Origin: Basidiobolus meristosporus CBS 931.73
Lineage: Eukaryota > Fungi > Basidiobolomycota
DNA length: 64,000 bases
Direction of reading: 5' to 3'
NCBI GenBank assembly: GCA_002104905.1
Contig: MCFE01000097.1
Span: 1-64,000, forward strand
Of this stretch, positions 40,036 through 58,627 are shown piece after piece. Position numbers and translations under genes: made by a program. The first letter of the stretch is position 1. Each line of letters begins with the position of its first letter. The notes under the pieces were generated by a model. It searched no databases. It was not told the origin of the DNA and saw nothing but the letters and a program-made list of their open reading frames with translations.

Positions 40036-40590
40036 CTATGCGTGATGATAGCAGGACATCTGGTAATCTTTCAAGGTCAGTCCACATTTCTCATAGAAGG
40101 CGATGTTGGATTGATTGGTGTTCAGAATGACCTTGTAACAACCGAGCTTCTCGCTGAGGGCTTTGAGCTGCTCAATCATACGGACTCCAAGTCGCTTGCC
40201 TCGTTGGGAGTCGTCAATCACGATATCTTCGATGTGGGAAGATTTGGCGCAGCCGCGGATGAATTTGTACTCTACCAGTAGGGTGCCGCATCCAACGATG
40301 CGACCGCTCTCTTGGTCTTCGATGACGACTACGTAGTAGTTCTTGGTGTTGCGCATGGCCTCGAAGGTTTCGACGAATGTGGCCTCGGAGGTCTCCCCAA
40401 CAGAGGTCAACTGAGCCAGACATTCAAAGAAACCTTTGTTGTAGTCGGTTGCCGCGAGAGGTCTCATCAGCAGGCCATTCGGCAGGGTTGCTTGAATCTC
40501 GGACGAGAGCAGATCGTACGAGAAGAGGTACTTGGAGTTCTTAGAGACCGGAACAAGGGTGACTTCAGAGTTGGCACTGTGGATGGGCAT
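40036..40590 (-). CDS. GNA1: Glucosamine-6-phosphate N-acetyltransferase (GNAT), intronless, 184 aa
   Basis: MRPLAATDYNKGF, LLVEYKFIRG, HIEDIVI, GKRLG, GCYKVIL, FYEKCG. Start taken at MPIHS. Confidence 0.9.
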   Translation of the reverse strand: MPIHSANSEVTLVPVSKNSKYLFSYDLLSSEIQATLPNGLLMRPLAATDYNKGFFECLAQLTSVGETSEATFVETFEAMRNTKNYYVVVIEDQESGRIVGCGTLLVEYKFIRGCAKSSHIEDIVIDDSQRGKRLGVRMIEQLKALSEKLGCYKVILNTNQSNIAFYEKCGLTLKDYQMSCYHHA

Positions 40591-41415
40591 TGTGAGGCAA
40601 CGATAACTGAGGATCAGCCAAGGACCATTCATCTCTTATATAGAGATGGATTAACAGCATCCACACGAGATAATTAAAGGATAACCAATTGTGTTGAATC
40701 TCCAGTAATCGTGACGCGTGGTACGATTATCTTGTGAACATAGCCTTCAGAACCTTGATAACTGCTGTTTCAGAGAGGGCCATAAATGGCAAGGTGTCTC
40801 ATCGTTCCTAATCTCCGGTTGATCGAGTTACCAATGTGGATAAATCCATTTTCTATCTTTGTTGATCCAGGGAAGCAGTGGGTTTCAGTTGCGCCGGTGA
40901 AATCAGATAGATGACGGGTGGATTTCGTCAAGATTAGATGGCGCATTTAATGCACACTTTGCAAATGGAATTTATGCCAATATAGTAATCGTGGACTGGC
41001 CGGCACGCGTGAGTGCGCAGGGGAAATGATAGGATTGTTGGCTAGGTTCTCATGGTTGGTGTACACTTGGAACTAGCTTTATTGAATGGGCGCGCCCGTG
41101 ATAACGCCTGTGGCTACGATCAAATACAACCCTTCAGACGGGCTTTGGAGTTTGACCATGCCATTACCAGGTTGAATGAACCGAAGAGTAAGGGTGAAAT
41201 GAACCTCTGATCCATACGATACTGTAAGTTTTAGTTTAGGTTGGGTTGGGTTGATAAAGATTACGGTTTAATTTGGATGTTCGTGTGTACTTTCAAAATT
41301 GAAGAGTGAAATGCTTGGAATAAAACTAGCTTACATTTGTAGTGAAACAAAGGCGATAGTGGTGGTAATGAGTGATAGTGGCGGCGGCTAAATTAGATGT
41401 GACACGGTCTCTTGA

Positions 41416-43583
41416 TTAGGCATCGATGTTGTCGACCGGGACTGGCTTGATCTTGTCTGCTGGTTGGAAACCGAACAGCTTTCCGAAGAACCAGAGCTGC
41501 GCTTCCGTCGATCGAATGATATTCGTGGCAACATGAAGCCCGTGCTGATCATTCTCGAACGTCACATAGGCCACCGGCACTTTGCTATTCCGCAAAGCGT
41601 TGACCATGATTTCAGCTTGCTTGGCGGGGACAATCTGATCATTCAAGCCCTGGAAGAAGATGCAGGGACTGGTGATTTGGTCAGCATGATGAAGTGGTGA
41701 CCGCTTTTGATAGACCGCTCTTGCTTCCGGATAGGGCCCCAAAAGACCGTCTACATGATGAGCAAGTTTAATCAGCGATTCAGTAGGCCTTAGGGCTAAT
41801 GCAGCTTACCAAGATACTTCGCTTCAAATTTGTGGATACCTAGGACCAACATTTCTAGGTCAGACACTCCGGAGTAACTGGCGCCAGCTTTGAATACATT
41901 GGGTCGGAATACAAGACAACAAAGGGTGGTGTATCCGCCAGCAAACCCTCCAGTGATCGAAAGACGCTTGGGATCCACAGAGCCCCGATCAACCAAATAC
42001 TTGGCCGCATTGCAGCAATCATCAACATCGATGATCCCCCAACTACCTTTAAGTCGGTTTCGGAACTCCCGGCCGTAGCCAGTACTTCCGCCATAATTCA
42101 CATCCACTACCGCAAATCCTCGCGAGGTCCAATACAGGATCTTCAAATTGAAGTAGCTGAACGTTTGTGAGGTAGGTCCACTATGAGACATGGTGAGAAG
42201 CGGTGGCTTTTGGTCATCTGGGCCCTTGAATCGGTCGTTTTTGGGTGGATAGTAATACCCGTATGCTACTTGCCCATTTTCGGTGGGGAAGGTAATGGAT
42301 TCGGGGATGGAAATGACGGATTCTGGAATATGGACTCGACCGGTCTCAATGATGGTTTTGATGACCTTTTCGGCTTGGACATCATACAGCACCAGACTCA
42401 GTTCGTGGTAAGGATTACCGGCAGTGAAAATCAGGATGTCGTGGTTGCTCTCCGGATGCCTCAAAGCCCTCACGTTCGATATAATGGTGAACGGGGTTGG
42501 CAATTCTTTCAGGGATTTCTCCTTCGTGTCGATGATTCCGATGTGGAAGGTTCCTTCCACAGCGTATGCTGCAGCAATCTTCGTTGCATCTGAGCAGAGA
42601 ATGGAGAATGTCGAGCGATTAAAAAGCCATTCCGGAACTGAGAATTCGGCCTTCATCGGCTTTTCGAGCACTAACTCGGGGATATTTTGCTCCTTGTCGT
42701 AGTGATAAAGATTCCAGAATCCGGTTCTGTCGCAAGCAAAGTATAACGAGCCATCGCTGTTGAACCTAGGCTGACCAATGCTTTCAGGAAGAACATTATG
42801 ACCAGCAATTTCCTTGTTCTCTGATAGGGTTACTTCTCCATCAGAATCGATGGCCAACACCCCAGTACAGAGACGAGTACTGTCCCAAGGCATAAAGGGA
42901 AGGTTCCACGTGATGTATGCCAACTGTGTAGGGTCGGAGGGGTTAACTCTTGGGGAAGAGTAAAAGTCGTGGCCTTGAGTCAAGACGGTAACGTTGAAAA
43001 CATCCTCGGGCAGATCGAGTCGGACAACAACTAGAGTATTGATTACATCCTCCCGTCCTTCACCAAGTGGTTTGTGCTCTTCCCTGACGCAGATCAAGAA
43101 CTTTCCCGAATCATGAATAGTAGGGTCAGCATATCTATAGGAACCATCATCAGGGGTTACTGGGATAATTTTCTCCGGTTGGTTAAGATCTATTTTATAT
43201 AGTCTGAAGTCGAGGTCGTTAGAGAAAACAACTATGTTTTCTTTAACATTGAAACTTCCACCACCGTATTCGTGTACACCTATAAAAAGTATAGAAAAAC
43301 ACAGCTTAGTATAAGGTTAACCACGTTGCATTTTAGTCGACGTACGAGTCCTAGGGCTGAATGGATGTGGTGTAAGCTCCACAGCATTCTCATCCAAGCT
43401 CTCCTCAAGTCGTTTTAGGAGCAAGACGGCGCGTCCACCTTCTTCTGGCCTACCCTCTACCCAAAAGACGGTATTGGTACTGGGCTCAACATGGACATCG
43501 TAAATAGCCACTGAAGAAGAAGCAAGTAGAGTTGCGGAGATAGGACTCTCCCAGGAACCGTAATCACGTACTTCGGCACTCAT
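41416..43583 (-). CDS. S9-family (prolyl oligopeptidase/acylaminoacyl peptidase-like) protein, 3 exons; nucleophile Ser replaced by Phe
   Basis: YGSWESPI, spliced RTRVHEYGGGSF, YWTSRGFAVVDVNYGGSTGYGR, GGFAGGY, QGLND, QHG. Introns 43280-43345 and 41751-41809. Confidence 0.9.
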
Positions 43584-44186
43584 ATCTGTGTTTAAGAAAA
43601 GGACCTTCCTAAAATTAAACTATACAAAGGAAGAGAATGTGTATTTTAATCTAGCTTCGTTTAAAGGTAATGTGTGGCCCTTGATTTCAAAATTTGGAAA
43701 ATCTGGTAATAAATCATCTATCGAATTTCTAATTTCCCAGCTTTTTACTGACCATTCAGCGTGCGTATATTTTGATGAGCTGGACAAGTCATTTTCTATG
43801 TGAGATGACAGCATCATCGCAACACGGTGTTCACTCATGTTTTCCCTTGGCACATAGGATCATTGGATCTCGATGACCAGGCTTTTTTCGATTCCTAGAA
43901 CGTCCAGACTTCCCATCAACATGGTAATTATTTAGTCGCCTAGCCATACAACTAATGTGGAGACTGTCCGATCAAAATGGGGAATTTTTCGGCATGTGAG
44001 CTAATGGATGTAGACATACAAAGTCATAAAATGTTCCTCATTTTTACTTCATTCTGCTATTATTTGCATCTCATCAAGTGCTTCAGATACGTTGTTTGAA
44101 CTTCCAGTAACACCTCTATCACTTCCCTCAACTTTTCAGTCATATCTGTACTCCACAGCTGAATAAAATTCTTGCCTACCTATATA

Positions 44187-46222
44187 ATGGGGAAAGGAAA
44201 GCGCGCCCTTCAACATATCTTTTCAACCAGTTCAATCTCGAAAGACGAAGAAAAGGAACCCTACCTTTTAACGCCTCCCTTATCCTCGGCTGCCCACTCT
44301 CTATCGCCACTATTAAGCGAAACTGATAATGATTCTCCTCTAGTAAGAGATCACTTGGTTCCCGCTCGAAATCCACCCAAAACGGTGAAGAGTCACCCGG
44401 AGGAGCTGGAGGATGTACCGTTACCGATCTTGATCACAACCTACTTCGGCTACATCGTGCTTATTCTCTTTGGCCACATCAGGGATTTGTTCGGGAAGGT
44501 GTTTACCAGCTCCGAGTATATACCGTTCAGCTTCATCGATGTATGCTATTTTTACCCATTACGATTTCGAGTGCCTTATTTATCTGACACCTCTCTAGGG
44601 CTATGCACCCATGATATCGGATTTCGAGAGTTTCTACAGACGCAGACTTTATCGTCGTATCAGCGACTGTTTCAATCGACCTGTGATCGGTATACCCGGA
44701 AGATTCGTCACTCTTTTGGATCGAACCAGCGTAGATTTCAATTCCACTTTCAGGTAAAAAAAAGGAATTGCGAAGTTTCCAGTGCGCATGTACTGATATC
44801 TATTGGGTAAACAGATACACCGGGGGAACAACCACCCTCTTGAACCTGGGCTCCTACAACTACCTTGGCTTCTCCGAGAACGATGGCCCTTGCACCGATT
44901 CTGTTGAAGACAGTTTACTAGAATATGGGCTCAGCACAAACAGTACCCGTTTCGAAGGAGGTTCGTTTATTTTCATCGCTAGGCCTAGTCACAAGACCAA
45001 GCCCGACTCACACGAGATCACCCTTAGGAACTCATGAGCTTCACAATGACGCCGAGGAGTTAATTGCTCGATTTGTTGGGCAGGAAGCTGCCATGATTGT
45101 AAGCACTGGGTATGCTGCCAATGCGACCACCCTTCCTGCTCTGGTCACCAAGGTATTATTGTTAGAGTTAATGGACACGCTGTTAGGACGCGTTTACTCA
45201 CCACAAGTATTTTAGAACTGTCTGGTGATATCTGACGAGTTTAACCATCCATCACTTATCAGCGGTGCCCGAATCTCTGGTGCGGCTAGTCGTGTCTTCA
45301 AACATAACAGTAAGCGTTTGTGAATAGTTTTAACGAAGCAGCATTGCTGAGATCTCAAACTCCAAAATAGGCATCGATAGTCTTGAGCAGGTCCTTCGCC
45401 AAGCTATCTCTCAGGGGCAGCCACGTACCCATCGACCATGGAAAAAGATCCTGGTGGTTGTCGAAGGTCTTTACACAAACGAGGGGTCTATCCTTCGGCT
45501 ACCAGAGATACTCGAATTAAAGCGGAGATACAAATTTTATCTCTACATTGACGAGGCACACTCCATCGGCTCCCTTGGATCCTGTGGCAGAGGAATATGT
45601 GATTATTGGGGGGTCTCACCTTCAGAGGTGGACGTCATGATGGGGACATTCTCCAAGTCCTTCGGAGCGGCTGGTGGGTACGTTTCTGGCTCACGAGAGA
45701 TCGTCGAACATCTGCGTCTACAATGCTATTCCTCGGTCTATGCGGAGACTCTATCAATTCCGGCACTACAACAGATCATCTCGAGTGTGACAATCGTCAT
45801 GGGCGAGGATGGAACCAACGAGGGAATCCGAAGGCTGGAGAGACTGGCCTTCAACGCCCGCTACTTCTCCTCCAGGCTTCGGGAGATGGGCTTTATCATC
45901 TATGGGGATATTGATTCACCGATCATTCCATTGGTCCTGTTCAACCCGGCGAAGATTCCGTAAGTATCTCGCTCTACCAATTTCCACAATCCCTCAGTTT
46001 AACTGACTTCTCTCCAGGGCCTTCTCGCGGGAGTGTCTTGCCCGGGGGATCGCGGTCAATGTGGTTGCCTACTCGAATACTCCGCTGGTGAGTGGGAGGG
46101 CAAAATTCTGTATCTCCGCGACGCACACCAGAGAGGATCTGGATTGGGCGCTCCAGCAGATCAGCGAGATAGGTGATCTCCTGAGACTTAAATTGTGTAA
46201 ATTTCCAAAAACCCACGCATGA
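44187..46222 (+). CDS. LCB2: Serine palmitoyltransferase LCB2-like subunit, divergent (6 introns by my splice model)
   Basis: [75 protein letters not shown] (PLP lysine present). Confidence 0.92.
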
Positions 46223-46478
46223 TTCACCGTCATGTCAGTGTTCGTGTAATATCTCCTAAGCTTTCAATGTAAAAATCCGCCTATTTCTAGTAACAAAACA
46301 AAGGAACATATTTGTGCCATTTATTCATCCAAAAGATTCACCCGTTACCAGTTGATTGACCATACTCGGATGGTCATGGTAGTTGATGAAAATAAATCTA
46401 ATGTAACGCACTGATCATTGCTGAATCGATGATGCTAAATGGGGGTTGGGTGTGCAATGGAGGGGTGCCCCATGCAGT

Positions 46479-47823
46479 CTAAAGAATGGCGGCTTCCTCG
46501 TCGGAATTCATCCATTTCATCGCCATCTCGTAAGCCCACAGCGTGGCGGCGTTCGCAGGGAAAGCACGAGCCATGGTGGGTCCGAAGCCACGGAAGAAGG
46601 CCCGGTAGCCCGACTCGGCGTTCAATTTGATGGCACAGTCGATGAAGTTCTTGTAACTACAGGGAAAGAGCCAGTGATGAGAAGAGGAGATCGATTGTTC
46701 CGGCCTAGTGGATGAAAGACTACCTTCTATCGTTCTGCATGCGACTTTTGATCACATCCTGAGGATAGCACACTGTCCAGCAACCGATGCCGGCTATGCC
46801 ACCGGCCATGAGCAACTCGAATCCATTGAGTTCCCGACCGGCCGCAAAGCTGTGTGAAAAGCTGGCCTTGAGCCCTTCGTAAATACCTGAATGTATGAAG
46901 GAGATAGGTTGGTCAGGTTGAATTTGGAGGTCTGCAGCACCCTAGCGAACAATAACATACCAAAGTAGGCAGCGAAACTTGGGATATCTCGGATGATAGT
47001 AATACTGATACCACGGTACAATCCTCGAATTCCGTGTTCAGAGAAGGTTCTCACCCCGCAGTTGAACACCCCAGTGTACTGTTGGGGAAGATATGGTTAG
47101 TGACAGGCCCACTTGAAGTAACCACCCGTGGATCGTTTACCGGTTTGACTGCATCGGCGGCTCCGGTGGCCACCGCATTGCTTTGAACCTGGAGTTTCAC
47201 CTTCAATAGCTCCACAGGACAATTAATGAACGACATGACCGAACCAGCCATACCACCGGCGACGGTGATCTGGGCTATGTTCTTGATTAGTACTGGCGGG
47301 AATAGGGTAGATGGTCAAGAGAAACATACTCAGAGTCAGAGGTTGGTCTTCACCAGTACGGAGCATTCTTCGGAAATACCCATTGGCACTGAATACCACG
47401 GCGTTGCTGAAAACCATCCACTTGTTAGCAAGAAACTCTCTCAGGATACGAGCAGTCTATTCGGATTTTTACCAAAAGCCAATACCGGCCAAGGGGGAGG
47501 TGACTCCTCGGTAGAGTCCAGCCAACTACAGATTTGACTCACGGTAAGTACGGGACATGCCGGGAAAGTTCGAAAAGTGTTGCTTACCCCTTCTTCTTTC
47601 AGTGTAACTCGGAAGCAATCCATGCCGCCGGTATATTTGGGAGGAACCCCTTGAGTTTGGAGACGAACCTACATGGAAACCCAAGTCAACACTCCGTATT
47701 GCTAGTGTGCTAAATAGTGAATCTTTTCACCTTAAGAGTATCGAAAGGGTGCCCGGCTACAACTTGAGCCCATCCTCCAATAGTACCGGCAATGAAGTCT
47801 TTGGCTGAGTCAGGAATGGTCAT
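46479..47823 (-). CDS. Mitochondrial carrier protein (carnitine/basic amino-acid carrier-like), multi-exon
   Basis: Three PxDxxKxRxQ signatures after splicing: HPFDTLKVRLQ, CPVELLKVKLQ, YPQDVIKSRMQ; also RDIPSFAAYF and RAFPANAA. Confidence 0.9.
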
Positions 47824-48340: not shown

Positions 48341-50239
48341 TTAGGCAGCACAGGCGATATGTCCATGTTCGAAAGGTACGGAGCTCAGACAATGATGAGT
48401 CAGTAATTTCTTGAGTCTATAGTTGGACATCTGATCACCTGAAGAGGCGGCGCGCTGAAACCACACGGCGGCTTCTTCTAGGTTGGCCTCCATCCCAATG
48501 CCTTTCTCAAGGCAATTACCCAGGTGGTATTGTGCCGAGACGTAGCCCTGTTCAGCGGCGCGACGGAACCAATACACAGCCGAGGTGGGTATACGCTTGG
48601 TACCAAAGCCATACTGAAGACACAGACCGAGCTTGTCCTGAGCACGAGGGTGATCTTGCTGTGCTGCCTTGTAGTACCAGTGAACAGCATTCTCCTCATT
48701 TTTTTCCACGCCAATGCCACTTTGATAGCAGTAACCGATGTTGCATTGAGCCCAAGGATTACCTTGCTCCGCAGAGCGCATGTACCAGTAGACCGCCTTC
48801 TTCAGATCTCGCTCAACACCGCAACCTTCTTCGTAACAGAACCCAAGGGAGTTCTGAGCAATGACATTTCCTTGTTCAGAGGCACAACGGAACCATTTGA
48901 CTGCCTCCTTATCATCCCTCTTGGTTCCCAAACCATTACGATAGCAAAGACCTAAAGAGAGCTGGGCAGGGGCATGGTTCTTGTAAGCAGCCAAGGTGTA
49001 CATGTAAACGGCATTCTCCAGATCAACCTCGACACCTACACCATTCTGATAGCAGTACCCGAGAGAATGAAGGGCGAAAATATTTCCTTGGCCAGCTGAG
49101 GCGTTGTACCATTTGACTGCCTCTTTCTCGTTCTTCTCTACGCCAATGCCGTTTTGGAAACAAAAGCCAAGGTTGTGCTGGGCTCGAGCGTGGCCTTGGA
49201 GTGCGGCCCGACGGTACCAATAGGCGCCTTTGGTCTCATCTTTCACAACGCCGATTCCATTCTGGTAGCAGTAACCGAGGTTACACTCAGCCCAAGGATA
49301 GCCTTGCTCTGCGGAACGGGTGTACCACCTGGCGGCTTCCACTTCGTTCCTTTCCAAACCAATGCCGTCCTCATAACAGTAGCCAAGAGAGTTTTGAGCG
49401 AAGGCGTTTCCTTGCTCGGCGGAAAGTCTATACCATCTGACGGCCTCAACGACATCTCGCTCAACACCGATGCCATCTTCGTAGCAGTAGCCGACGTTGT
49501 AGATGGCCACAGATTCGCCTTGCTCAGCTGCGCGTCTGTACCATCTCATCGCCTCCACCTCATCCTTGGCTACACCGAAGCCTTCGCCATAGCAGTACCC
49601 CAAAATCCCTTGACCACGGGGATGGCCCTGCTCAGCAGACTTCTTGTACCATTTGTAGGCCTCGTGGGGATCTTTGGAAACGCCGATCCCGTCGTGGTAA
49701 CAGACACCAAGGCAGTATTGGGCAGCGGAGTGATTTTCGAGAATAGAGGCATCCAGCAACCAGGAGATTCCGGACTTGCCAAGCTTCTCCACTCGCTGCT
49801 GCCACATGTCGGCTTCGGCCCAATCGATCTTCACGTTGGGTCGACCGTACTTGCGCAGGAAAGCCAACCTAGCTTGGGATAAGCCGTCACCAAACTCAGC
49901 AGCCTTGAGGTAATACTCCTCGGCCAGTTTGAAGTCTCGGACGACACCCAAACCGAACTCGTAGCAGAAGGCCAGTAGCCCGATGGACTGATGATAGCCA
50001 TGCTCCACGGATTTCTCGAAATACTCCACCGCTTTCGCCTCGTTGAGTGGGAAGTTTTGGCGTCCAAATAAGTAGTGCTCACCCAGGGTGAACAGACGGT
50101 GTCCCTCGTTAAGGCGGGTCGAGGGGGGCTGGACCAACTTGCTGACCATGTTGTGTGTGCGAATTGAGCCGGGCTTTTTGTGAATACGATGTAGTAGCTT
50201 CTTGGATCTAGTGACTAGGAAAGAAGACAGGGCAGCCAT
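48341..50239 (-). CDS. Sel1-like repeat protein (~15 repeats, 12 contiguous 36-aa units), intronless, 632 aa
   Basis: Repeated AQxxLGxCYxxGxGVxxDxxxAxxWYxxAAEQG. Start taken at MAALSS. Confidence 0.93.
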   Translation of the reverse strand: MAALSSFLVTRSKKLLHRIHKKPGSIRTHNMVSKLVQPPSTRLNEGHRLFTLGEHYLFGRQNFPLNEAKAVEYFEKSVEHGYHQSIGLLAFCYEFGLGVVRDFKLAEEYYLKAAEFGDGLSQARLAFLRKYGRPNVKIDWAEADMWQQRVEKLGKSGISWLLDASILENHSAAQYCLGVCYHDGIGVSKDPHEAYKWYKKSAEQGHPRGQGILGYCYGEGFGVAKDEVEAMRWYRRAAEQGESVAIYNVGYCYEDGIGVERDVVEAVRWYRLSAEQGNAFAQNSLGYCYEDGIGLERNEVEAARWYTRSAEQGYPWAECNLGYCYQNGIGVVKDETKGAYWYRRAALQGHARAQHNLGFCFQNGIGVEKNEKEAVKWYNASAGQGNIFALHSLGYCYQNGVGVEVDLENAVYMYTLAAYKNHAPAQLSLGLCYRNGLGTKRDDKEAVKWFRCASEQGNVIAQNSLGFCYEEGCGVERDLKKAVYWYMRSAEQGNPWAQCNIGYCYQSGIGVEKNEENAVHWYYKAAQQDHPRAQDKLGLCLQYGFGTKRIPTSAVYWFRRAAEQGYVSAQYHLGNCLEKGIGMEANLEEAAVWFQRAASSGDQMSNYRLKKLLTHHCLSSVPFEHGHIACAA

Positions 50240-51447
50240 TACGAAGTGTAAGAGCAAACTTATGTGGTACGTGCGAGCACAATTATTTGGATAGGTAGGG
50301 TCAGTTTTCAAGCAAGGAGCCAGTCTATGCTAAAGGGAGAGAGTTGGGGGAAGTGCAGTGGAATTGAACAGCAGTTCAGGCTCTTCTATAAAGGAGCAGA
50401 TTCCAAAGTAAGACAAAATTTAAGAAGGGGTAGAGGGGTAATTAAGAATCTGGCCAACTAGGGAGGTTCAAGTGAAACCAGGGTTGGTTGATGAATATAA
50501 AAACTCTAAGCAAGGTCAAGGGGAGTAGCCAGGATGATTAGTTCTTAAATAATTAAAGACATGTACCGGTTGAAGGCAGTCGAGTGGTCCGGATTTTTTT
50601 CAATTTTTTGCCACTTGATTAGAGGTCAATTTCGAGCTTCGGCTTCTCTTAGCTAAATTCGTTGGCCCACTCAAATATCGTAGATTGGGATTGGACTGGG
50701 AACCGTCCAATATGTTGCCATCGCTAGGAAATCCACCACTAAATTAGTCGCTACAATTTAATTAGACGAAGGAAGGACTGTGTCGAAGGTTCAGCAGGAA
50801 TTCCATCTTAGGAAATGATTGGAGAAAATGATCGCGATTGAAACCAGTCAAGCTCCCATTTCTCGGTGTATTGGCCCAGTTGGCCTCATCCCTGACTAGA
50901 TGGAGGTTACATGACGCAAAGTGAGGTTCTGTTCTGCTGCCACATTGATCGCTACTGTCCATCGTCTCTTCGTTAGAGGTGTAAGGACGATAGTGCCTCG
51001 GGGAGTCTGGAATCTCCTACCTCAGAGGCCTCCATTGCCTGTGGAAAGGGAAGGGGAAGGTGTATATTTGATTGGCCATAAGTGGAGATTTCGACAGCCT
51101 CGTGGCCATCAAAATGGGGAGGGCCTGAAGCTTATAACCGTCGTATCACATTAAAGGTATTAGAGATGCACACCAATCCCGATCAGATGGATCACAGCGC
51201 TTGCCGATAGAAGCTCTTCCTAGGAATTCATGATGCAAATTGGCCGTCCAGTGCCGCCCAATGATCAGTTAATTCGGTCATAGATTTCCCCACGCAATGA
51301 TCTATCCACCAGAAATCCATTACATTTGCCAGCCAGTGCCTATTTATACCGACCCCTCTCCAGATATGGTGCGAGGCGGAGACGATTGGCTAGGGCTGGT
51401 GCTAACCATATCCACTTGCCACATGGCCTGCCTATTGAAATGACTTG

Positions 51448-57483: not shown

Positions 57484-57547
57484 GTGGCCAGCATGGTGGT
57501 GAACTTGCACTCAGACATTGATTTCCCTACATTCAGTTATACTACTA

Positions 57548-58627
57548 ATGATGTACAGAATAAGTTGCTTCGTTCTCCTATCTTTTGCTTCCACACTCGC
57601 GGTACAGGGGCAAGACACTGAGATGAAGACCCACACTTACCCTTTAGAAACAGTCACATGGTACATTGAGACTGAACTTGTCACTGGGACTATTCCTGCC
57701 CACACCCAAATAGCCTCGGTGTCAGCAGTCGCCTACACCGAAACTCTGAGTGGTGATACGATCATTGAAAATGCAGGCCGTTCGGATGTTACAAGAGCCA
57801 TTTCCCCAGAAACGGTCACTCGAGAAATACCTGGGACAGTGGTTGAGGATTCTCTGCAGTTGACCAGCATCACTAGAACCTTGTGGTCTTCGCAGTTTAC
57901 TGAAACACTTTCTGAACAAACAATTACCGAGTCCGATATTACCGATGACCTGAGTACGATAACTGGCCCAGCTACTAGTGGAGTGATTATTGGGACAGTT
58001 GTCGAAATGCTCTCCTCAAGACAAGTAATCAATACAATTCCGGGGCCAACCGTAACCAACTATATTGGAGTAGGTGATCCTTTGGTACAAACAAGTGCCG
58101 GGTCAGTAACCACTCAGTACAGCGCATACACCGAGTATATTGAAACGCTGGACTCCACCCTTGTAACTCGGGTTATCCCCACCTCATCTATAATGCGCCA
58201 GGTTACCATTAGCACCATCTCTTCCTCTGGCAGTGTAAGTGGCATCAGTAGCTCAAGAGGCCCTTCCGTTTCCCCCTCTGGTAGTGTAAGTGGCATCAGT
58301 AGCTCAAGAGGCCCTTCCGTTTCCCCCTCTGGTAGTGTAAGCGGTATCAGCAGCTCAAGAGGTCCTCCAGTCACCCCTACGGTGACAGTCACCTCGAATG
58401 TAACAACAACAACTACTGCGGGAGCGACCGTTAGCCAGACTACCACTGTACACAGTACCCTTGGGACTCAGCATGCAGGCAGTCTTACTCATTCGAGTGG
58501 TAGGTCAATCACCTCTTCCCCGTCCGGCACGAAATGCCCTACCCCATCGACGACTTGCAAGCCCAAGTCAATTAGATGCCACACCAAGCCTAAGCCCAAG
58601 CCCTCAAAGTGCCACACCGAACCCTAA
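57548..58627 (+). CDS. Secreted Ser/Thr-rich protein with 17-aa repeats and a basic Cys/Pro/Lys tail, 359 aa
   Basis: Signal-peptide-like MMYRISCFVLLSFASTLAVQG; long ORF. Confidence 0.8.
   Translation: MMYRISCFVLLSFASTLAVQGQDTEMKTHTYPLETVTWYIETELVTGTIPAHTQIASVSAVAYTETLSGDTIIENAGRSDVTRAISPETVTREIPGTVVEDSLQLTSITRTLWSSQFTETLSEQTITESDITDDLSTITGPATSGVIIGTVVEMLSSRQVINTIPGPTVTNYIGVGDPLVQTSAGSVTTQYSAYTEYIETLDSTLVTRVIPTSSIMRQVTISTISSSGSVSGISSSRGPSVSPSGSVSGISSSRGPSVSPSGSVSGISSSRGPPVTPTVTVTSNVTTTTTAGATVSQTTTVHSTLGTQHAGSLTHSSGRSITSSPSGTKCPTPSTTCKPKSIRCHTKPKPKPSKCHTEP
58226..58369 (+). repeat. Coding tandem repeat, ~2.8 x 51 bp (SGSVSGISSSRGPSVSP)
   Basis: Units start at 58226, 58277 and 58328. Confidence 0.95.

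Follow-up and report, generated by a model that had tools for sequence, protein, structure and literature searches.

A Divergent Clade of LCB2-Type Genes in Basidiobolus with Replacements in Near-Invariant Active-Site Motifs

Introduction

Three elements count as fixed in every serine palmitoyltransferase (SPT; EC 2.3.1.50), the enzyme that opens sphingolipid synthesis, and in the whole alpha-oxoamine synthase family: a conserved arginine, the PATP loop and the YSM loop. What, then, does an intact gene do in which all three have changed? Such a gene lies at 44187–46222 (+) of the 64,000-nucleotide stretch of Basidiobolus meristosporus CBS 931.73 analysed here (contig MCFE01000097.1, hereafter the window), and it encodes a protein of the LCB2/SPTLC2 type. 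An earlier note, made from the letters of the window, had taken it for an LCB2 paralog with a remodelled substrate pocket. A natural lineage replaced these elements together, and strong selection has since preserved the replacements in several copies that are expressed; an unaltered canonical enzyme is present as well. An altered function is likely. The reading we favour, with a probability of roughly 0.5, is that the product is a specialised catalytic, pyridoxal 5′-phosphate (PLP)-dependent LCB2-type SPT subunit with a rewired carboxylate clamp and tunnel gate, which would stem from a duplication in the Basidiobolus lineage.

Family Membership and Paralogs

The gene has seven exons and six GT..AG introns of 58–67 nt each, and its 555-amino-acid product is the database protein P0285 (‘PLP-dependent transferase [Basidiobolus meristosporus CBS 931.73]’), with 100% agreement over all seven exons. 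Exons were searched singly, and whole-protein steps were done with P0285. Among solved chains, the best match of exon 6 is human SPTLC2 (PDB 6m4n, 7k0i; 5.9e-79, about 65% identity over the exon), followed by Arabidopsis LCB2a (1.1e-74) and yeast Lcb2 (6.5e-67); the top PDB-chain matches of exons 1–5 and 7 are likewise SPTLC2, Lcb2 or LCB2a. Exon 6 also carries the fold-type I alpha-oxoamine synthase domain (Pfam PF00155, 1.1e-21). P0285 falls inside the LCB2 clade, as sister to the canonical Basidiobolus LCB2 (support 99/96), and shares with canonical fungal LCB2 (yeast Lcb2, PDB 8c80 chain C; P0298 and P0303) the architecture of an N-terminal membrane/amphipathic helix followed by the synthase domain, the FESFY tyrosine (yeast Tyr110), the His/Asp/His/Lys set and the AY ahead of the PATP loop.

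A profile of one Mucorales LCB2, together with separate exon rows, ranked Basidiobolus proteins at the top, and these fall into two groups. The divergent group consists of P0285, P0286 (94% identical to P0285) and P0288 (81%) in B. meristosporus and of P0287 (84%) in B. ranarum. The canonical group consists of P0298 in B. meristosporus and P0303 in B. ranarum, to which P0285 is 64% and 63% identical. When full-length P0285 was searched against the 8000 candidates sharing most words with it, nothing beyond the divergent copies was closer than the canonical pair, and exon 6 matches in a library of 50%-identity representatives were all at or below 66% identity. The divergent clade is confined to Basidiobolus in the data searched.

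The gene is therefore a paralog, as the earlier note held, and not the only LCB2, the case that the note had set against itself: P0298 is encoded on a different contig, and the reads contain at least one further copy of canonical type. This further copy (reading ENVPLFILIS and KRFKSAEYAP) occurs in both DNA and transcript contigs (X1, X3), with loose ends at 44439 and 44494. Since it matches neither of the canonical loci (L003, L005), B. meristosporus has at least five LCB2-type genes. Many segments of the B. meristosporus genome are duplicated. A DNA run of this species also contains two versions of the locus (44000–46400), of P0285 type and P0286 type, at a word depth of about 3:1 and with a synonymous divergence (dS) of 0.47. 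At the differences listed (40 of 411), the minor version has the same letters as 14–15 kb contigs of a differently named organism, C; the two versions could represent a hybrid, unequal homeologs or mixed nuclei. The comparison covered runs X1, X3, X4 and X5 and locus L001.

Replaced and Retained Residues

How unusual are the replacements? Motif frequencies were counted over 409 fetched LCB2-type sequences, and a baseline of 150 diverse representatives was also scanned. The SM of YSMEG is present in 377 of the 409 sequences and PATP in 213, with only conservative variants otherwise; the arginine of the RxRF position occurs in 317, and lysine occurs there in the four divergent Basidiobolus copies only. 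YSMEG, PATP and the second arginine of RxRF are almost invariant in the 150 representatives. Out of 199 columns conserved at 90% or more in 125 canonical LCB2s, 14 differ in all four divergent copies (93% of the conserved columns are kept). A stricter set of 81 columns, invariant in 121 LCB2s from outside Basidiobolus, is retained completely by the canonical Basidiobolus copies (81/81), whereas the divergent clade has replaced seven in every copy (listed in Table 1) and 13 in at least one. M245T and A359S/T, in near-invariant columns, are likewise common to the divergent copies. Seven PLP and substrate motifs together contain 37 conserved positions, and eight of the 14 fixed changes lie there, against an expectation of 2.6 (hypergeometric P = 9e-4, for motif windows set from prior knowledge and partly after the data had been seen).

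At the motif level, all four divergent copies keep NH, DEAH and SK, that is, the stacking His, the Asp and His of DEAH and the Schiff-base Lys. They depart from canonical SPT at the carboxylate Arg (SpSPT Arg390, human R509), which is Lys in all four; at the YSM(E/D)G loop, which reads YTNEG in P0285 and whose Ser and Met are invariant in the 125 background sequences; and at the PATP gate loop, which is SNTP in P0285 and PNTP, PNAP or PNVP in the sister copies. Human SPTLC2 has kept YSMEG, PATP and RxRF. Ser in place of Pro at the start of PATP is found in P0285 only, and the change common to the clade is Ala→Asn. A PNTP loop also occurs in P0180, an entomophthoralean Logan fragment 86% identical to the Massospora LCB2, together with YSLEG, SIGT and a conserved RVRF; P0180 acquired it independently, so Ala→Asn in the PATP loop arose more than once.

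Every motif change that the earlier note had listed is present where it placed it, and its description of kept PLP-binding residues holds in all four copies. Its broader statement, that near-invariant motifs had altered together, stands for YSMEG, PATP and RxRF and has to be trimmed elsewhere. AY before the PATP loop and GY in the GFATN motif are ordinary variants, since yeast itself has VVAYPATP and GYGTN, and NHAS→NHPS falls within the natural variation of NHxS (A/T/S). The clustering of changes in active-site motifs survives, being common to four copies in two species and statistically enriched.

These patterns bear on whether the protein is an enzyme at all. It could be an LCB2-like subunit with little or no catalytic activity, on its way to becoming a pseudoenzyme, that competes for LCB1, ORM or small subunits and so modulates SPT output. 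The conserved Arg is gone in all four copies; positions of the catalytic shell vary copy by copy (PATP Thr→Ala/Val; GFATN Gly→Glu; KSFS in B. ranarum); strong selection on the remaining protein would fit conserved binding surfaces; and P0285 scores about 30 bits below P0298 on the alpha-oxoamine synthase family profiles. LCB1/SPTLC1 offers a parallel, as a diverged family member that also acts inside the SPT complex. However, LCB1, the known non-catalytic subunit, has lost the PLP Lys and the catalytic His, Asp and Arg (PMC6148460), while the divergent LCB2 copies retain Lys, His, Asp and His in all four cases, despite saturated synonymous divergence, and have only the Arg altered. We regard a non-catalytic or weakly catalytic role as improbable.

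Expression and Selection

Run X3, which comprises 27 Mb of contigs, is labelled ‘DNA?’, and none of the runs is labelled RNA. It contains a 2875-nt contig that matches the gene with 0 mismatches and omits all six introns exactly at the model junctions, and for this reason we consider the P0285 gene expressed; the six exon–exon joints were looked for in DNA run X1 and none was seen. Loose ends of other X3 contigs match P0288 and P0286 exactly, which places all three divergent B. meristosporus copies in transcripts. In X3 the canonical-type contig has a word depth of about 2300, against 679 for P0288, 393 for P0285 and 18 for P0286; such depths are a poor measure of expression level, and the canonical value was obtained by subtraction from the summed depth at 44453.

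Between P0285 and P0286, dS is 0.47 and nonsynonymous divergence (dN) is 0.027, which gives a dN/dS of 0.057. The exon 6 differences listed, 16 of 41 in that contig piece, are all at third codon positions. In comparisons between the two species, dN was practically the same for the divergent (0.089) and the canonical orthologs (0.093), and dS is saturated. Relative-rate tests show an approximately 2:1 excess of lineage-specific changes in the divergent copy (e.g., 76 vs. 32, chi-square 17.9). The clade passed through a burst of change, and strong purifying selection followed.

Lack of expression and neutral evolution, the two circumstances that the earlier note thought would undo its proposal, are thus not what we see. 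The same evidence bears on the possibility of a redundant duplicate that is drifting to loss, its motif changes being neutral decay. The many duplicated segments of B. meristosporus would suit this explanation, but it is contradicted by the reading frame and all splice sites being intact in four copies, by the dN/dS of 0.057, by the same replacements being fixed in two species and by spliced transcript contigs for three copies. We reject it as very improbable.

Residue Roles and Possible Functions

Which steps would the replaced residues affect? In yeast, the PATP loop gates the substrate tunnel and adjoins the ceramide site (PMC10550967). The PATP/Arg loop and its arginines are mobile; they bind the carboxylate of serine and have a stabilising effect on the quinonoid (PMC11906848). 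In bacterial SPT, acyl-CoA binding shifts the carboxylate to Arg390, and a mutant of the equivalent Arg forms an intact external aldimine with an undetectable quinonoid (PMC6148460). Ser185 of the S. multivorum enzyme, in the Ile183–Met186 loop, touches PLP O3′ and catalytic waters, and Thr241 and Ser243 hold the phosphate (PMC10196870). The S. multivorum sequence reads TFSK at this point, and T378S (human numbering) therefore just reproduces a bacterial state.

Mapped onto these roles, the predicted remodelling falls on the carboxylate clamp, the PLP O3′ loop and the tunnel gate and not on the side-chain pocket, which would be largely partner-supplied; side-chain selectivity has been placed largely on a loop corresponding to the partner (LCB1) subunit (PMC11906848). 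Because it is the clamp, the O3′ loop and the gate that are replaced, a new amino-acid substrate would be no more likely than altered catalysis, gating or regulation. The combination of Arg→Lys with two new Asn looks more like rewiring than like loss.

We hypothesize the following scheme for the specialised catalytic subunit. The divergent LCB2 would still pair with LCB1 in the endoplasmic reticulum and still perform the decarboxylative Claisen condensation, and the step past external-aldimine formation would be the one rewired. A lysine would take the place of the arginine that accepts the amino-acid carboxylate and permits quinonoid formation. Two new asparagine side chains would enter, one in the PATP gate and one beside the PLP-O3′ Ser loop, in which Thr or Ala would replace that Ser. 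Relative to the housekeeping enzyme, the expected outcome would be either another substrate preference (a polar or unusual amino acid or acyl-CoA) or other kinetics or gating.

Several points weigh against this interpretation. Positions that are invariant elsewhere keep varying inside the clade. The PATP loop occurs in four versions (SNTP, PNTP, PNAP and PNVP), and in B. ranarum the glycines of GFATN and of KSFG are replaced by Glu and by Ser (KSFS), respectively. Such ongoing erosion fits relaxed constraint on canonical catalysis and counts in favour of the weakly catalytic or regulatory subunit. Given the bacterial Arg mutant in which no quinonoid was detected, the Lys may cripple catalysis instead of redirecting it, and in this enzyme family side-chain selectivity would be set largely by the loop of the partner subunit. 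Finally, the evidence for expression consists of contigs of a single run labelled ‘DNA?’.

An isozyme with an ordinary product would account for part of the same data. It would make 3-ketosphinganine from serine and palmitoyl-CoA, and its changes would tune regulation and not chemistry, for example, ceramide/ORM gating through the PATP loop or a lower sensitivity to environmental inhibitors of the myriocin or sphingofungin type. The PLP residues are retained; T378S (the TFSK of S. multivorum SPT) and the Ala of GYAAN resemble residues of bacterial SPT and of 8-amino-7-oxononanoate synthase; and the PATP loop both gates the tunnel and adjoins the ceramide-sensing site, where both ceramide-contacting Tyr are kept; extra SPT copies have also been proposed as a fungal resistance device (PMC13612406; PMC10936153). 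On the other hand, Arg→Lys, Met→Asn and Ser→Thr/Ala strike residues that are conserved in all surveyed LCB2s and have no known regulatory role, and an inhibitor gene cluster is absent nearby. We consider the isozyme possible, if rather doubtful.

A bolder form of the specialised-subunit reading, which we put forward tentatively, is that Basidiobolus has a second, chemically distinct SPT, with a Lys and Asn clamp and an Asn-lined gate. Its product might be a non-canonical amino-lipid, with a more polar amino acid (aminomalonate, homoserine) or a functionalised acyl-CoA as the substrate; alternatively, it might act as a bypass enzyme, insensitive to inhibitors, in a fungus of gut and soil that is exposed to SPT poisons. 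A precedent is SPTLC3, a second catalytic subunit with an acyl-CoA preference of its own, which keeps YSMEG, PATP and RxRF. In comparison with human SPTLC2/SPTLC3, the divergent clade is an independent, Basidiobolus-specific duplication.

Like SPT, the synthases of toxin clusters (SphA, PDB 9pep; MyrA; Fum8) condense an amino acid with an acyl thioester in a PLP-dependent reaction, and they use substrates other than serine, e.g., aminomalonate or alanine (PMC13612406). SphA is distant from the gene studied here (E 1.8e-9 with exon 6, against the value of SPTLC2 given above). Enzymes of this type sit in clusters that contain a polyketide synthase (PKS); the neighbours found here are a GNA1 homolog, a peptidase S9, a mitochondrial carrier, a Sel1-repeat protein, an oxidoreductase and a subtilase. 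Neither the 64-kb window nor the paralog loci contain a PKS, non-ribosomal peptide synthetase (NRPS) or lipid-pathway gene, and a biosynthetic-cluster or self-resistance locus is ruled out on this ground. We also considered whether the upstream acetyltransferase gene could be a Sli1-like N-acetyltransferase acting on myriocin or long-chain bases, and discarded the idea, as it is a homolog of glucosamine-6-phosphate N-acetyltransferase (3e-39).

Literature searches for Arg-to-Lys mutants and for human residue numbers gave nothing usable, and the library searched yielded no paper on the divergent clade. In a 2026 survey of sphingolipid genes in fungi, B. meristosporus figures only with an expansion of ceramide synthases. 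The clade offers a ready-made experiment on the roles of the Arg, the PATP-loop and the YSM-loop residues. It may also yield SPT variants that accept new substrates or tolerate inhibitors, and it may point the way to unexplored sphingoid lipids of this early-diverging fungus, which can infect humans and animals.

Origin of the Divergent Clade

In a maximum-likelihood tree of 33 LCB2s, those of Basidiobolus form one clade (support 99/96). The canonical pair has a stem of 0.11; the divergent four have a stem of 0.48, about four times longer, with support 100/100 and short crown branches. The divergent genes have a common seven-exon structure with identical internal exon lengths. Introns 1–5 coincide in alignment column and phase with introns in the LCB2 of the chytrid Spizellomyces, and three are common to Syncephalastrum; these are ancestral fungal positions, which the divergent genes have kept. 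The canonical Basidiobolus LCB2s and the Conidiobolus gene, in contrast to the six-intron divergent gene, are intronless (L003 8001–9626; L005 8001–9608; L006 2585–4213). An N-terminal SSxAHSxSP segment is present in the divergent copies, Conidiobolus and Massospora and has been lost from the canonical Basidiobolus copies.

Gene order is also informative. A GNA1 homolog, peptidase S9, the LCB2-like gene, a mitochondrial carrier, Sel1, S27e and Mob1 follow one another in the window, at the P0286 locus and at the B. ranarum P0287 locus, and the same order is only partly kept at the P0288 locus. Distant paralogs of two of these neighbours accompany the canonical genes: GNA1 (36% identity; L003 4394–5032, upstream) and peptidase S9 (56%; B. 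ranarum). Their presence suggests old paralogous blocks. That the canonical copy is a simple retrogene inserted at a random site is weakened by these neighbouring paralogs, and block duplication with intron loss fits better. Taken together, gene structures and neighbours suggest an old block duplication; introns would then have disappeared from the canonical copy, and sequence divergence would have affected the copy that retained the ancestral structure. We have here a clear case in which the intron-bearing copy of ancestral structure diverged and the intronless copy kept the housekeeping sequence.

At the sister locus (L001 8199–11871), the public annotation joins the Sel1 and mitochondrial carrier genes in one 869-aa model, which is probably a gene-model fusion.

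Feature Coordinates and Surroundings

Table 1. Exons, motifs and neighbouring genes in the window, with the seven invariant positions replaced in every divergent copy (numbered by the protein of the window and by human SPTLC2).
Feature	Position	Strand	Remarks
Exon 1, aa 1–118	44187..44540	+	N-terminus and membrane/amphipathic helix; aligns to yeast Lcb2 46–91
Exon 2	44599..44753	+	FESFY segment, yeast Lcb2 Tyr110 equivalent; aligns to yeast Lcb2 98–147
Exon 3	44815..44960	+	matches human SPTLC2 162–209
Exon 4	45028..45152	+	STGYAAN at 45102–45122; Met→Thr and Thr→Ala vs. SMGFATN
Exon 5	45216..45309	+	first codon Asn (45216–45218), Gly in all others
Exon 5, NHPS	45243–45254	+	PLP-stacking His kept
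Exon 6	45371..45959	+	matches human SPTLC2 286–479, E 5.9e-79
Exon 6, YTNEG	45472–45486	+	T and N at 45475–45480
Exon 6, DEAHSIGS	45550–45573	+	
Exon 6, TFSKSFG	45646–45666	+	PLP Lys at 45655–45657
Exon 7, incl. stop codon	46018..46222	+	AYSNTP loop at 46067–46084
Exon 7, RAKF	46097–46108	+	Lys at 46103–46105 in place of conserved Arg
Upstream neighbour, glucosamine-6-phosphate N-acetyltransferase (GNA1) homolog	40039–40635	-	3e-39 to human GNPNAT1; two genes upstream
Upstream neighbour, peptidase S9 gene	41419–43583	-	
Downstream neighbour, mitochondrial carrier gene	about 46479–47100 and beyond	-	
Downstream neighbour, Sel1-repeat gene	48344–50329	-	662-codon open frame, 13 Sel1 repeats
Replacement T249A			human SPTLC2 T241; GFATN
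Replacement G261N/S			human SPTLC2 G253; first residue of exon 5
Replacement S327T/A			human SPTLC2 S319; YSMEG
Replacement M328N			human SPTLC2 M320; YSMEG
Replacement T386S			human SPTLC2 T378; TFTKSFG
Replacement A508N			human SPTLC2 A500; PATP
Replacement R517K			human SPTLC2 R509; RxRF

Elsewhere in the window, a 374-codon open frame at 57503–58624 (+) has a signal-like start, a repetitive Lys/Pro-rich tail and no Pfam match. The overall guanine-plus-cytosine content is 41%. The region from about 2000 to 39000 contains many broken copia-type retroelement frames on both strands.

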